Source: Auanema rhodensis (Eukaryota; Animalia; Nematoda). Taken from it: a DNA stretch of 64,000 nt. Below the pieces are notes generated by a model. It worked only from the letters and a program-made list of their open reading frames with translations. It ran no database searches and had not been told where the DNA came from. The stretch spans positions 7,130,001-7,194,000 of the forward strand of contig OZ059899.1 of the NCBI GenBank assembly GCA_964057225.1, written 5' to 3'. Both the position numbers and the translations under genes were made by a program. Positions 55,192-64,000 of this stretch are shown here, in pieces. Numbering within the stretch: the stretch's first letter is position 1; each line of letters starts with the position of its first letter.

Positions 55192-56053
55192 ATGGTTTAC
55201 AAGTTGACATATTTCAACTGCAGAGGTAGTTTTCAAATGTTTTTCCTATTCACACTCTTCATTAGGACTTGGTGAGCCAATTCGTCTCATGCTCGTTGAT
55301 CAGGGGATTGCTTATGAGGATGAGCGCTTTGAAGTTTCTGAATGGCCACAGTTCAAGCCTTCCATGGTAAAATATATAATTTTCAATTGAGTCAGAACGA
55401 AAAGAAAATTATAGACATTCGGACAAGCTCCAGTATTGTACGAAGGTGATAAACAGATTGCTCAAACTGGAACTATTAACCGTCACTTGGCCAGAAAACA
55501 TAGTGAGATTACTAGTTTAGTGAAAGTCAAGAAAGAATCAAAATGGTTATAGATTTGAATGGAAGCAATGAATGTGAATCAACCTTCATTGATATGGTCT
55601 TTGAAGGATGTCGCGATTTACGTACCAAATACGGTGCTATCATATACGGTAACTTTGAAGCTGACAGACATCAATTTGCTACTGAAGTTATTCCTCAACA
55701 TTTTACTGTATTGGAAAATCTTATGAAAACATATTGTAATGGAGAGAAGTTTGTTGCTGGTGAAAAGGTGAAGAATTCAAGAAAAGAGATAGATAATGAT
55801 GAAAATCCTCTTAGATATCTTACGTCGATTATTCTTTATTCGAGCTTCTCGACATAATGCTTGTTCTGGAACCAACTATTCTTGACAAGTTCCCTATTCT
55901 CAAAGCGTTCCATAGTAGAATGAATAGCAGACCATCTCTTCATGTAATACCTTTTCCATTTACAAAATGTATTTCTTATAAAAATTAATTTAGGCTTATC
56001 TGGAGAAGAGAGCTATTTCTAATATTCCTATTAATGGAAATGGAAAACAATAA
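55192..56053 (+). CDS. Glutathione S-transferase, pi class (gst-1-like)
   Basis: MVYKLTYFNCRGLGEPIR, FGQAP, ISYVDYSLF and C-terminal PINGNGKQ*, typical of pi class. Confidence 0.93.
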
Positions 56054-57831
56054 ATGCAAAATGAGAATCAATTTTTTTTTTCAAAATAAATTATGAATAT
56101 TGAACGTATTTTACATAAAATCAGCCAAACATAATAATTATTCAAACATTTTAAAAAATAATTAAATTCATCCCTATCCTCTATACTATAAAGTCAAAAA
56201 AAGGTTTTTTTTTGTCATTTAAAGCTAATATTCATCGTTTTTTTTTCTATTCTCATGTGTATGTATAAATACCTCATGTAAAGTTACAAACTGAACAATT
56301 TACGTAAAAAACTCGTTTATTTTTCAATTCAAGATGTTATTATTGACTTTAACTTTTCAACATTTGAGAGAAAGAAATAGACCGAAAAGAAATGTTTTCA
56401 AAAGTTCTCAAAACTTTTTTTTTTTTTGAAAAGCTTTTAAAGGCTTTTTTCTGTTTTTTTTTAAACATTGTTTTCAGTTGAAAAATATCAAATGTTCCCA
56501 TATTTTTCCTAAGATAAGAGAAGTTTTGTTCAAAAATTAGAAGAAAAAAGATAACGTTCATTCTGATAAGAAGCATATTAAACCTGAACTTTCCTGCAAA
56601 ATTTGTACGTGATGTTGTTCATCATTCAAATGAATATTTTCATTCGTTTTTACATAAAAATATAAAAATAAATCTTTAAAAAGATCATTTTCATGCATTT
56701 TTTAGTTTGTTATATGTTTATATTATTATTTTTATATAAACTAACAATAACATTTAAATGAATGTTTTGTGAATAATAATAAGTTTTTTTAAAATAAATA
56801 ATTTCATTTTAATTGTATTTTAACCTTTATTTACCCTTAAACACATAAATGTTATTTTCATGTAGTCTCTTAACATGAAAATAACATTTATTTTTTTATT
56901 TTTTTTCTTTAAAATTTAATATATAAGTTAGCAATAAGTTGTATTTAATTTGCCTTGTTTCATCAATTTCTAATGCTGATTAACTTTCGTAAAAACATTT
57001 TTTTCTTAATTAGGATTAAATCTATCATTATTTACCTCATCTAGTTTTCATACTATTTATCTATCTGAATGACATCACATCTTGAATCGAATGTCATCAT
57101 CCCTTTCATACCCTCTCGAAAAACTTTAATTCTTCAAGGACAAAACACAACTTTTTGTGTTGATAATGAAGTTTTTTCTTCCAATTTACTTTACATAATT
57201 ACGAAAAAAAACGAAAAAATAAACGAAAAAGTTCGTTTTAATATTAAATTTCAAAGTTGGCATTCAGATTAATGCTTAAAACCTACTTCTCATATCTACT
57301 TTTCTGAGTAAAAATATAATGTCAAATAGTGAATGTATTGAATATAAAAATAGAAATATTAAATGGTTTTTAAGAATATTCAAGTAGTTATTCTCTTCAA
57401 TTTTCAGAAAGAATTTTTGAATATTTTATAATAGTCTTAAAATAGTTTTTTGTTATAAGGATAAAGTTTGAAAGTAGAAAAGAAAAATAAAAAATAAAAA
57501 TAAATTTCAATCAATGAAAGTGATAAAACAAAATTTTAAAATATCATAACAATACATTGAAACATTATACTAAAAAGGAAAAATGTAATAAAACATTTTT
57601 GAATTAAAATGATGAAAAACAAAACAAAAAAACTAAAAACAAGTAAGATATATAATGAAACAGAGTAACAATGCAATAAAGACTGCAATAAGTTTGTACC
57701 ATGTTAAGCAATATAGAAAATTGAACTTAAACGAAATGTTTTCTTTATATATTCTATTTCATAGTAACAGTTGTCCTCTTCTGAAATAAGTATATCCGTT
57801 GCATATAATGTTCTTCTCGGCAAAGATTTGT

Positions 57832-57903
57832 GGCCGAATGGTCTAGGGGTATGATTCTCGCTTTGGGTGCGAGAGGTCCCGGGTTCAAATCCCGGTTCGG
57901 CCC
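57832..57903 (+). tRNA. tRNA-Pro (anticodon UGG)
   Basis: 72-nt cloverleaf, acceptor stem GGCCGAA/TTCGGCC, anticodon TGG 57864-57866, GGTTCAAATCC T-loop, T5 terminator just downstream. Confidence 0.98.
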
Positions 57904-58342
57904 AAATTTTTGAATTTTGGTGTTATATTTGTACTGTAGCAATTTTCAGAATCAAACCATGTATCTCTTTTGAATATTTTTTAATAATTAATTTAAAATA
58001 CATTTAAACATTATGAATGTTCCATGCTTTATCTCATTCTGCTTATATCCATCACAATGGGCGAAATTTGAAAATAACGAACGAAGAAAATGTTATTAAA
58101 TCATACATCATTTCTCGTCTAATTGCACATTCTACTCATTATACATTAGGATGCAGAACTAGTGGAGTTGTGTATGGAAACAGCAGAACGTGAAATGAAC
58201 AAAAACAGAAAATAGGTGAAAAAAAAAAAGAATAAAATTATAATTATTATACATGAAGAAAACATATATTATAAATTACATTATTATATAAGATATCTAG
58301 AAGTTGTTACGCCTTTTCATGGAGAAGATGAGATGATTAGTA

Positions 58343-60129
58343 TGAGGTAGATAGTGTACGAGGTTCATACATTGTGAGGGACAAGTAAAAATACCATACA
58401 GAACAATACAATTTTCAAAAAAAAATTAAGAAAGGCTCACGTGCTTCTAAATTACATCTTTTAAAATAATTCTATATTTGTTTTCTGGGTGAAAAAAAGC
58501 TGCGAAACCAATAAAAAATAAAACAAGGGGACTAACAACAAAACGAAAAAGAGAACAGGAAAGTATATGCCAATACAGGTAGATGCAAATACCGTATACT
58601 AGCGGAACCGGTGTGTAAACGTAGGCAGATATACTTAACTATTATACATGGAAACAGATATCATGAAGAAAATATAAATTTTGATTGGTCATCTCTAGAT
58701 TTGATAGATTGTGTTGCTTGTTCTCACAAGCAGGAAATCCAATAATCAGAGATTGAGCCTACGTATGTTATAGATGTGTCTATCTACAGCTTGAAAGCCT
58801 AAATTGAAGCGCCGAAAAATGCAATACATTGAGTTCATAGAGAATTTTGTTTCACAAAAAAAAAATAAAAAAACGAGCGTTGTAGATGAACACAGTCCAC
58901 TCATAAACCACCAAAATTTCAACAAAAGAATTGAACGATGTTATAAAACACAACAAAGAAATAGAATAGTTATTTCATATCTAATTCATCACTGTGTTCA
59001 TTTAGCTTCATAATCTATTTCCAAGTATGATAATAATCTTGTATACAGATTTTGACCTCGTGTGTAAATATCTTTTATAGAGTGAGAATAGAGGTATAAT
59101 CAATGAACACAAGTCTCTAGTTCAGCAAAAGTTTATCATACAAAAGATCTCTTCAGAAAGCTAAATAAAAATTTTTGAAGATAAATAAAAAAATTCCAAA
59201 TCAACTAGTGATTCTGAAGTCCCGCAAAGATAGGTGGTATATGAGGGCATACTCTAGATTAATAATTCTTAAACTTTAAAAGAAAACATGTATAGAACAG
59301 GCTAGCAGGGAATTATTAAACGAAATAATTAAAAATAAACTTTTTCTCAACGGAAACGTTTTGGAAGGATTACTTCAACTTTTTTGAAACAAGGATAAAA
59401 ATATTTTTGGCGTTAAATAAATCACCAGGTACAATACACACAGGTAAGGAGGTAACTGGTACAGTAAAACCGGATTTGAATAGAATTTGACTGTCAGAAT
59501 GAAACGAAAGATTTTCTTCGTTCACTTCCGGTTAACAGCTGAGGTAGATTAGATGAGGTGGTTGTTAATAAAAACATAAAATATACTTTGTAGTGAGAAG
59601 ATCTGATCGTAAGCTGGAGCCTAACGACAAGAGTACGCACGAATCGATTGCGAGAAAATTGGGGTGGGGGATTGGTTCGAGGTAGTTGTAAATAGACGTA
59701 GATAGAAGAGAGGTATGACCAGATTGCTAGACGGTCTGCAGCTTGTATATGGCTAACCGGCCAGGTACACACACACACAGAAAGTCCCGCATTATGTTTG
59801 AGATGATGAACAGTTTAAGATTATATGATTGATAATAAACTGAGAAATATCAGGAGATTGAGTAATGTATATGATGAATGAAGTATAGATTACATAGAGA
59901 AACTCATATACATGTAAAAACGGGATCTTTCTAGCTGAAGCTATGCGGAGAGTTCCGGCTGAACCGGCAGCTCAAGTAACAACGTTCAAACCGGCACTGG
60001 GCATGACACTGGACCTGGATAATAAACATGAGGTTGTTGGTACGGAAACTCCGACGTTTGAGGTAGATTAATAGGGAGGTATAATATATGATTGAGGTAA
60101 GCCAGTGATCACGCCAGTTGCAGAGGTAG
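58343..60129 (-). promoter_or_regulatory. Cluster of let-7-family seed-match sites in the putative daf-12 3' UTR
   Basis: Read on + as miRNA-sense: TGAGGTAG at 58343, 59540, 60059; GAGGTAG at 59679, 60123; TGAGGTA at 60093; GAGGTA at 59091, 59449, 59710, 60076. Confidence 0.85.
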
Positions 60130-60244
60130 ATAATATGGATATAACGAACAATGAAAGCAGCAGTACTGGACCAGGATTTGAATGAGTAAAAATAATTTCG
60201 AAAGATAGACGGCAGGAGGAAGGACTCATCTAGTTTCTTGTCCG

Positions 60245-63200
60245 TTATTCAACCTTGAAGATTTCACGAGGAAGCGCTTCGGTTTCTGCTGAATCGACGG
60301 TACCCAGGAAAAGCATACCAGCATTATGACTGATATCTTTCAGCATGTTCAATGCAGATGGAAGCTGAGTAAACAGCTTATGAGCATCTTCTCCATAAAG
60401 AGATTCCAGATATCTGAAAAGGAATAGAACAGTCTAATTCAGATAAATTGATAAGAAAGGAGAGAAAAATTTAGAAATTGCAACATACCGACGCAAGATT
60501 TTACAATAATGATCATGGAAGATGCTGATTTGTTGTTTATCACGCTCATCTGTGATACAATCACGAGGAGAGAACATAACTATCAACATAATTAAGGCAA
60601 TGGCTAAGTCATTTGTTCGAATATCGTCATGGAAGAATTGGAAGAATCTGTTGATTATTTCATATAAAATCTCATTTATTGTGGTTAACTTACTCATATA
60701 CACGATGTTTTTGCTCTCCGTGACTATCTTTTAACTGGTCGAACATATCAAATGGAACTTCTCCCTTAACTGTTGGGGACCGCCAAACTCCTTTGGATCC
60801 ATCGAATCGTGTTAAGCCGCGAATCGTCAACATCTCAACCATGGCAGCTGAAAAACAAATAAATTTATGATGAAGATAAGTTAAGCTAAGCATACCTTTC
60901 AATAAAGCGAATTTGCCATCTTGTGATAAATCATTGAATGCGGGTAGTCGTTTTGCCATTTTAACAAGACGCCTCATGGCAACATCCATGATATTCATAA
61001 TATCAGCAGGAGTCTTATTCGTCTTCAAGAATGATTCGCGTTGACGTCCCTGTTCCATAGGATCATTCATGCCTTTGAAAGCTTCAGCAACCATATCAAG
61101 GTCCCGAAGTTCCATGGCATTCAGTTGGAAACTAAGGCGAGGATCAGAGGAGCCATATAAAGGAACATTCTAAAAGTAATATATTGATATTATTGCAAAA
61201 GAAGAATAATAAGTAGCATACTTCTAGCACTCCTCTACTTGTTTGTCCTTGCAAAACTTGTGGGCTGTCAATTTTAAGAGCATCCTGAAAAAGATTTCCA
61301 TATTTAGCTGTTCATTAAGTTTAAGCAAGGTTTTGAAAAATTGTCACTTTTTCGCTGCACTTGAATATGATCTCACAAACCTCTATAGTTTTGTCAAAGT
61401 AAACTTTCATACTAGCAACCTTCTCAGCATAATCAGAATTGGAATATCCGCATCCACCAGCAGCAGTTTGATCCGTTCCCGGCACGGCAGCAGTTGCGGA
61501 ATTTCCAATTTCAATGTACGTCGGCAAAGCTGGAATAACTAAACGTTGCATTACTATGACTATCCAAATAGCATTGAAAGTTTAAAAATTTACCTGGAAC
61601 ACCTGTACGAGCAGTGGGTTGAATCATTGTGGGACTGTTAACAGGCATTCCTTGTATAGGACTACAGAATGTTCGGGGTTGTGGGCTACCAAGACTAGGA
61701 GAGTACGATGGTCTGAAAAATGATTGCTTTAATGAAACCGCATTTAAGTAGTTGATATACCTTTTGTTTGGTGGCTCTTCTCCTGGTTTACTTCCAGCTA
61801 GCTGAACTAAATTCTGGTAATCATCTATTGTCAGAATGACTTTTCCAGATTGAGTATCAACTGTAACTGGAGATGGAGTACTCGGGTTAGGTCGGACAAT
61901 TGTTGAGCGTAGTCTTTGCTGCATCACGAGATTAGGATCATACTGAAATACAAGTGTGTAAAAAACAGGATAAAATAACAAAAATTGGAAAAGTGTGCAA
62001 AACTTTGAACTAAGCGTTAGCATTTACTAATGAAAAACTAATAGCAACTAAACACATAAAGACTAAAACTACAACTACAAAGGTTGATACTAATGATAAG
62101 CCATGTCAAGCTATGAAAAGCTTTACTCACAGCATCAGGACTTCTTTGACCTCCTAAGAGTCCGATAGATCGCGACGGCGGAGAATCTGAGGCCGTCGAG
62201 CCGTTAGGGCTAATCAATGGATACTGAAGAAATGAGGTGAATATAAGGCTAATCCTCTTATTTTTTTCTTCTATTCTACATTTTTTTAAATACATATATA
62301 ATCATTTAACATTTGTTTTTACGAGAAAAAAATTTCCCAATCAAGAAATTGAAAATTGAAATGTCATATAGGATTATAAACATCATCTCACATCAGGAGG
62401 AGGTAAATTAGGTAACTGTAATTTGCATAAAATCACTTCAAAGTTTCTTGATTGGTAATTTGATTGATTATTGTTATAGTAATTTTCTACTTCATACTGA
62501 AAACACGTGTCGAGTGATAGCAAATGTTAAACATAACCTACCGCAGCACCAGGAGGGCTGACAAGTGGAGCAGCTACACCACGACCATTCATGGGAACGA
62601 GCTAGAAGAAGACGATATCAATACGAGTATGAACATCAGTCATGAATATCTTTTCTCATTCTCGTAAAATAATTTCATTTTCTCTCCAACATTGAAATCA
62701 TAGTTCCCATAAAAGTTCTCGGTACTAATTGGTTGATGGAATTCATATTTCCCATAAAATATTACAAGACAACATGAGAATTTTGAGACAATTTCAAAAA
62801 TAATTTTTGCCCTACTATATCTTTTAACCAAATATAGTATATATAGTATATATAATATATAATATAACATACTTAATAACTGTACTTTATGTTGTAACAT
62901 TCGCAATCATTTTTTTTACACTTTTGAGAAATAAAAAGAACTCGCAAATATCAATAAATTCGAGATTTTTCAAAATCAATCTCGATAATTTATTTCTCTA
63001 TATCACAATAATGAGCAAACATGTCAACGTGTTGATCGGCTAAATGATCAGAGTATAACTGATGAGTAAGCTATTCTGACATAATAGTCATCTAAGTCTG
63101 CTGATGTAAATGAGTTTGTCTGTTACTGAAATGAATCCTGCGGTGTTTTCGACAGGATCATAATCAAAGAAACTTTTTGACAGAAACTTCACTTTGTGCT

Positions 63201-64000
63201 TACAATTGGAAATATGGTATTTTAGTTCAAAACAACAAAAATAAAAAATTAGATGATAGTAAAGACAGCATTTACATCAATCAATTTCCTCCATAAACCT
63301 TGCACACTATATCTTTTAAAGTTGTTTTTAAAAATTTTATAAAGTATAAACTCTGAAGATAAGATATACCTGAGGTTGCTTCATCTTGTTTTGATTTGCA
63401 AGATTATTCAGTCGGGAATTTTTCCTTCGTCTTAATTGCTCATCATTAAGAATCCATTCTTTCTTCATGCCAACCTACAATGTTATTTTCAATTCAAATT
63501 TTCGAATGAATTTTGTATAAAACTTACAGCAAAACATTTCCGTAAACGACATTTTTGGCAGAAGCGACGGCTAACTGCATTAATTTCGCAATCTTCAGAA
63601 TATGGACATTTGAACTCCTGAAACATTTACGAAATCAATAAACTAAATTAGTATCGTTTTATGAAACATAAAAATGGCCATCAATTGAATAGTTTTCCAT
63701 ATATTTAAAAAATATGCAAACCGTTCAAATTAAAATCAAATTAAATGAAAAATTTGAATTTAGATTGTGTATCGCCGAAGACTTCTATGACCCTCGGGTA
63801 TTATTAAATCAATGAAAATGTTTCACAATTGAAATTCTTGATGAAAAAAACAAAAGTTCTCAACAACAAACTTCGGAGACGTCGACAAAAACAAAAAATA
63901 TAGAGAGAAACAGAGAAACTCATGATACTTTGACATCATCATGCTATTGGATATCGTACCTTCGGTCGCAATGCATTCCTTCGGAAGAAAGCTTTACAGG
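60245..64000 (-). CDS. daf-12: Nuclear hormone receptor DAF-12 (5' end lies beyond the window)
   Basis: [17 protein letters not shown]|[29 protein letters not shown]|[10 protein letters not shown]; [57 protein letters not shown]. Confidence 0.97.

Follow-up and report, generated by a model that had tools for sequence, protein, structure and literature searches.

A putative array of let-7-family target sites downstream of daf-12 in the nematode Auanema rhodensis

The DNA that follows the daf-12 stop codon in Auanema rhodensis is most probably a 3'UTR that carries a selected array of target sites for microRNAs whose seed is that of let-7 (GAGGUAG), through which Argonaute would lower the amount of DAF-12. 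The array is found in a stretch of 64,000 nucleotides (contig OZ059899.1, positions 7,130,001 to 7,194,000; hereafter the window) and is made up of ten canonical seed matches, along with a few marginal ones, in what would be the daf-12 mRNA. We propose that let-7-family microRNAs loaded into Argonaute would dock on these sites as their levels rise in mid to late larval life, and that the docking would lead to translational repression and mRNA decay, and so to less DAF-12 protein, as is the case for daf-12 of C. elegans. At least one of these microRNAs would be a mir-84-like species encoded on the same contig, 1.49 Mb away, and the four sites nearest the stop codon would act cooperatively, as neighboring sites 16-29 nt apart are known to do. 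We infer from these data that the sites are part of the mature mRNA, that they are bound and act in repression, and that there is a return arm in which DAF-12 would drive the microRNA genes; it is very probable that A. rhodensis shares the timing control described for C. elegans. In that species let-7-family microRNAs set the level of DAF-12, a receptor that decides whether the worm arrests (as a dauer or an infective larva) or grows, and that serves as a drug target in parasitic nematodes.

The seed array and the gene it follows

Over positions 58343-60244 of the window, the minus strand, which is the strand of the mRNA, contains ten copies of TACCTC, the complement of positions 2-7 of UGAGGUAG, and the plus strand contains none. 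A preliminary description of this DNA had given the same count and orientation, and its division of the sites into three 8mers, two 7mer-m8, one 7mer-A1, and four 6mers is reproduced exactly. Four of the sites are packed within the first 180 nt past the stop, and these are a 7mer-m8 at 60123-60129 (+117 from the stop), a 7mer-A1 at 60093-60099 (+146), a 6mer at 60076-60081 (+164), and an 8mer at 60059-60066 (+179), at spacings of 29, 18, and 16 nt, confirming the earlier claim of four sites in the 71 nt between 60059 and 60129. The same seed search places the remaining six further along the minus strand: a 6mer at 59710-59715 (+530), a 7mer-m8 at 59679-59685 (+560), an 8mer at 59540-59547 (+698), two more 6mers at 59449-59454 (+791) and 59091-59096 (+1149), and finally, at 58343-58350 (+1895), an 8mer with AACCTC 10 nt upstream. 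All three 8mers read TGAGGTAG on the plus strand. The marginal matches, also on the minus strand, are an offset 6mer, CTACCT (positions 3-8), at 58577-58582, and two instances of ACCTCA, at 60029-60034 and 59554-59559.

This array is specific to one strand and exceeds by far what chance would give. When that strand was shuffled 20000 times with its dinucleotides preserved, TACCTC was seen 0.59 times on average and never more than 6 times, versus the 10 observed (Poisson p ~9e-10), while 7mer-m8 matches number 5 versus 0.12 expected (p ~2e-7). A test for k-mer enrichment agrees, as TACCTC ranks first among the 4096 hexamers in the stretch, ahead by three orders of magnitude, and its density is 5.3 per kb in the array versus 0.21 per kb per strand in the rest of the window. 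An extended form, ATCTACCTC, is common to four of the five m8 sites. Repeats within 57950-60300 do not extend beyond the seeds and some bases on their flanks (no longer than 18 nt, with 83% identity), and thus the sites are independent of each other and not copies of a duplicated unit.

The gene 5' of the array is, as judged by exon-wise matches to the structures of DAF-12 LBDs, the daf-12 orthologue, the exons having been searched singly by reference and not as a joined protein model. Four LBD exons with ordinary splice sites are read on the minus strand above 60244, at 60896-61169, 60694-60847, 60489-60647, and 60245-60413, the latter being the last coding exon, with a TAA at 60245-60247, and their best structure matches are 3up0, 9tl4, and 3gyt. 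The first of these exons (60897-61169) matches the Ancylostoma DAF-12 structure 3up0 with an E value of 3e-37, its remaining matches all being DAF-12 LBD structures as well. In the case of the last exon (60248-60412), residues 1-55 pair with the C-terminal 55 residues of the Ancylostoma chains 3up0 and 9tl4 (E 4e-19), and the translation and these chains share the same ...FKVE terminus. As this exon is matched over its full length to the DAF-12 C-terminus, the TAA must be the true stop, and the first base past it, on the minus strand, is 60244. Pfam recognizes Hormone_recep in this gene, and a zf-C4 exon is present further upstream, near 63489-63626. In terms of exon identity, the strongylid DAF-12 proteins are nearest (~70-85%), followed by the Caenorhabditis-type (~57-66%) and then by Pristionchus, and orthologous loci in other nematodes are retrieved with these exons by tblastn.

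Extent of the putative 3'UTR and conservation downstream of daf-12

In its long form the putative daf-12 3'UTR would measure ~2.0 kb (58250-60244, minus strand), starting after the stop and ending where a candidate distal poly(A) signal, AATATA followed by a run of T (58265-58270, +1975), would place its lower end. The sense strand of this region is T- and C-rich (C > G, T > A), and the region contains no open reading frame of note. Surveys of C. elegans 3'UTRs provide a list of ten common nematode poly(A) hexamers. None of these occurs in the first 1107 nt past the stop (59138-60244), where ~4.9 would be expected and where only 0.5% of shuffles contain none, while the antisense strand of the same 1107 nt holds 20 such hexamers; it is therefore very probable that the mRNA includes the first eight sites. 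Five poly(A)-like hexamers (GATAAA, TATAAA, TATGAA, AATGAA, and again TATGAA) then follow within 165 nt (58974-59137, minus strand, +1108 to +1271), surrounding the ninth site (59091) and presenting a candidate proximal 3' end. This arrangement, of a hexamer-free 1107 nt and then a cluster, has the look of a region under selection to avoid early polyadenylation, after which a proximal 3' end may lie. Further candidates are found at +1767, +1876, and +1975. The canonical AATAAA is not present on the sense strand for 3.3 kb, which is uninformative, as 1.1 would be expected in 1.9 kb. The UTR is limited to ~2.3 kb by an adjoining gene for tRNA-Pro(UGG) on the plus strand (57832-57903), positioned tail to tail with daf-12, ~440 nt past the last seed site. 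Also converging on daf-12 is an open reading frame of 104 amino acids at 55543-55857 of the window (plus strand), which, judging by eye, we take to be part of a glutathione S-transferase-type gene.

To compare these data with other nematodes, DAF-12 proteins were identified by word searches (the queries being an exon, an alignment of the first hits, and a Strongylus protein), their loci were fetched, and the DNA beyond the stop, which tblastn with the last exon located in each locus, was scanned for seeds, with the loci of Haemonchus and Nippostrongylus left out of the comparison. Summed over nine other nematode loci, the regions downstream of daf-12 contain 20 seeds in the sense orientation, versus ~4.4 expected, and 2 in antisense. 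One example is a Caenorhabditis-type locus (C-terminus ELPGEFFKIK), with 6 sense seeds in 1.15 kb (p 2e-4). Another example is Pristionchus entomophagus, with 4 in 0.72 kb. Two sense seeds each are present in Necator americanus (in 0.9 kb, up to an assembly gap), in Teladorsagia circumcincta (in 1.0 kb), and in two clade III loci, and one is present in Mesorhabditis belari, in 2 kb; two transcript-like contigs and a Strongylus contig, all too short to judge, hold one in all. The array of A. rhodensis is larger than that of the Caenorhabditis-type locus (10 sites versus 6), with four of its sites next to the stop, and neither the positions nor the sequences of the Caenorhabditis sites are conserved in it.

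More specific conservation is apparent with the strongylids. The downstream DNA of Necator and Teladorsagia, whose assemblies are both gapped and show two seeds each in the sequence available, shares long conserved stretches, both of their sites included, as revealed by blastn. Between these two, a hookworm and a trichostrongylid, ~1.1 kb past the stop is 82-97% conserved, with 97% reached in a stretch of 67 nt that surrounds a let-7 7mer-A1 site. Three of the Necator/Teladorsagia blocks recur in A. rhodensis, in the same order. The first, AATCATAT.TTA.TACCTC, has its counterpart in the 6mer at 60076. The second is a block of 80 nt not related to let-7, CACCGGTT.CGCTAG (58585-58660, minus strand, +1585 to +1660), recognized through blastn and alignments and 85% identical over its core to the Necator and Teladorsagia DNA downstream of daf-12; a search for a common fold of this CACCGGTT block gave a weak signal and no common fold. 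The third is AACCTC, 7-8 nt, and CTACCTC, which finds its equivalent in the 8mer at 58343; its flanks align only moderately, and the 8mer and the second of the conserved strongylid sites are probably orthologous to each other. The collinearity of the blocks suggests homology between the strongylid daf-12 tail and all 1.9 kb of this region, a tail that would have been stretched by insertions in the lineage of A. rhodensis, with further sites gained. Most of the sites in the array are lineage-specific, and seed enrichment as such recurs in other nematodes.

From the signals and the comparisons together, a UTR of 2 kb and one of 1.2-1.3 kb are both plausible and may coexist, and inclusion of the ninth and tenth sites would depend on which 3' end is used. 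It is possible, if on the unlikely side, that the array is real but that the main mRNA ends at ~+1.2-1.3 kb, so that only the first eight or nine sites act, while the 8mer at 58343 and the block at 58585-58660 are outside the mRNA or are part only of a minor long isoform. Such an end would make sense of the five poly(A)-like hexamers that come directly after 1107 nt without any, nine of the ten sites precede +1155, and the sites of the Caenorhabditis-type locus likewise stop before its first AATAAA, at +1466. However, AATAAA is not among the five hexamers, and strongylid DNA downstream of daf-12 contains matching blocks, in the same order, for the stretch at +1585 to +1660 and for the 8mer at +1895, which argues that these two are part of the same functional unit. 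The best argument for the long form is the comparative one.

Predicted let-7-family microRNAs and a possible feedback loop

The genome encodes predicted precursors of the let-7 family, as two stable hairpins with the let-7 seed were found, both beginning with TGAGGTAG. The first is the mir-84-like hairpin, of 71 nt (C7:8684015-8684085, C7 being the contig of the array), whose 5' arm begins with the seed and whose minimum free energy is -29 kcal/mol (z -7.3); it matches the full Rfam model RF00811 (mir-84) with 33 bits and an E value of 7e-5, a score below the gathering score of 60. The second, near C7:12475093 on the minus strand (-27.7 kcal/mol, z -5.3), has the let-7 seed followed by TTCGAATTT on the 5' arm and has no match in Rfam. 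Scans for seed-plus-star patterns recovered the mir-84-like hairpin and nothing else convincing, and no hairpin was found for a family member starting with UGAGGUAGAU, which would suit the ATCTACCTC flanks. The canonical let-7 22-mer was not found in the assembly in hairpin context at up to 3 mismatches, and searches with the first 14 nt of let-7 at 1 mismatch, or with the seed plus GGTTGT with a gap, returned non-hairpin look-alikes only, while miR-1, the positive control, was found exactly and in a good hairpin (C7:15076884). Lin-4 in its C. elegans form, and miR-100, were likewise not found in the genome, at 2-3 mismatches. A scan of the whole genome with the Rfam let-7 model scored 57 of 17887 candidates and is thus uninformative.

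As to pairing beyond the seed, every site was paired in silico with canonical let-7 and with the two microRNAs predicted from the hairpins, and the duplex energies were calculated, the control being the 25 nt upstream, shuffled. The strings that the preliminary description quoted at 59554 and 60123 are present in the sequence. Its proposal that the sites resemble the 3' regions of microRNAs is not supported by this analysis: over the sites of the array, the mean energies equal those of the shuffled controls for all three microRNAs, including those from the let-7-family hairpins of this species, and 3' supplementary pairing is therefore at background. As a set, the sites look seed-only. Of the individual sites, the one at 59679 can pair without a break with the mir-84-like microRNA up to its position 10 (duplex -17.3 kcal/mol), and the one at 59540 has an imperfect ACCACCTCA 12 nt upstream, at 59554-59562, where AACAACC at 59560 could be usable with canonical let-7.

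The missing let-7, lin-4, and miR-100 may reflect either true loss or divergence of the let-7 complex, or gaps in the assembly. Precedents for both exist, as loss of let-7 is reported for some Caenorhabditis of the japonica group, in work cited in bioRxiv 10.1101/2024.07.19.604269, and as an early Haemonchus assembly was without let-7 although reads for it existed (PMC3282659). The absence seen here could be a loss as in Caenorhabditis or a gap as in Haemonchus. One scenario that would build on a loss, and that we consider improbable, is that canonical let-7 is gone and that the dense, mostly seed-only array is served solely by sisters of let-7 (the mir-84-like microRNA, for example), the number of sites having grown to offset the lost high-affinity pairing through seed plus 3' region.

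The preliminary description also had the entire loop that links DAF-12 with let-7-family microRNAs conserved in this species. The arm from the microRNAs to daf-12 is probable, given the seed array, the let-7-family hairpin, and the data from other nematodes; the arm from DAF-12 to the microRNA genes, for which the evidence is an enrichment of half-sites, is suggestive only. Activation of mir-84 and mir-241 by DAF-12 is known from C. elegans (Bethke 2009; Hammell 2009, as related in papers that cite them). The mir-84-like hairpin is preceded by 6 kb (C7:8678000-8684022) in which AGTTCA occurs 16 times versus 4.7 expected (p 4e-5) and AGTGCA 5 times versus 1.6 expected, the expectations being taken from 195 kb of this genome. 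Two direct repeats, AGTTCA-N8-AGTTCA, are also present (at -3071 and -1390), versus none in the 195 kb of background. The AGTTCA half-site, however, is bound by other nuclear receptors too. The high-affinity element for DAF-12 is a DR5 of AGTGCA-type hexamers (PMC3140985), and no such DR5 is seen upstream of the mir-84-like hairpin, where the repeat spacing differs.

Seed-match arrays are also known from the 3'UTRs of other heterochronic genes, C. elegans hbl-1 and lin-41 being examples, even if the genes are different. For C. elegans daf-12 itself, edits of the endogenous UTR demonstrate dependence on let-7 pairing (PMC9161110), and ribosome profiling demonstrates late-larval repression (PMC3514671). 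The system in A. rhodensis has in common with it an orthologous gene, multiple let-7 seed matches on the mRNA strand past the stop, and a predicted mir-84-like microRNA in the genome. It differs in that let-7 3' pairing matters in C. elegans, while there is no sign of such pairing here, nor was canonical let-7 found. P. pacificus daf-12 is already among the listed seed-matched let-7 targets, and the let-7/DAF-12 circuit of Haemonchus has been described as uncharacterized (PMC6677322). The array, along with the blocks that it has in common with Necator and Teladorsagia, indicates microRNA control of daf-12 well beyond Caenorhabditis. Concrete sites to mutate are provided, with modest added value for parasite biology, and no new mechanism is called for.

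Other potential readers of the motif

The sites could in principle be read by something other than a microRNA, such as an RNA-binding protein of the CUACCUC type or a DNA-binding factor at a downstream enhancer, which we regard as quite improbable. The shared ATCTACCTC extension would fit such a reader, as its positions 9-10 are left unpaired by both of the family microRNAs found. On the other hand, a DNA site is at odds with the 10:0 strand bias, the core of the motif is precisely let-7 seed positions 2-7 or 2-8 with a frequent A opposite position 1, which is the signature of Argonaute targeting, and daf-12 is a proven target of the let-7 family in C. elegans.

Even less credible is a function of the plus strand, on which the TGAGGTAG strings would represent the 5' ends of let-7-family microRNA genes or belong to an antisense transcript tail to tail with daf-12. 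The strings do resemble the 5' ends of microRNAs, but at all ten positions the predicted folding is no better than that of shuffled sequence (z from -2.0 to +1.9, versus -5 to -7 for the true hairpins in this genome), and no Rfam microRNA match is seen at E values up to 1, the tRNA-Pro being the sole match in 57700-60400. An origin of the seed matches by chance or through the T- and C-rich composition of the stretch is the least tenable reading, since, even if an excess of C over G and of T over A somewhat favors TACCTC over GAGGTA, it is refuted by the shuffles of the same strand, and the top hexamer is exactly the let-7 seed match, with a bias that recurs in other species.

A separate observation concerns CCGGTT, the second most enriched hexamer (p 3e-6), of which five copies are present on the mRNA strand, at 59994, 59967, 59760, 59473, and 58611. 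One of these copies is inside the 80-nt block at 58585-58660, and the DNA downstream of daf-12 in Necator and in Teladorsagia contains two copies each. This hexamer may be a site for another microRNA or for a protein.
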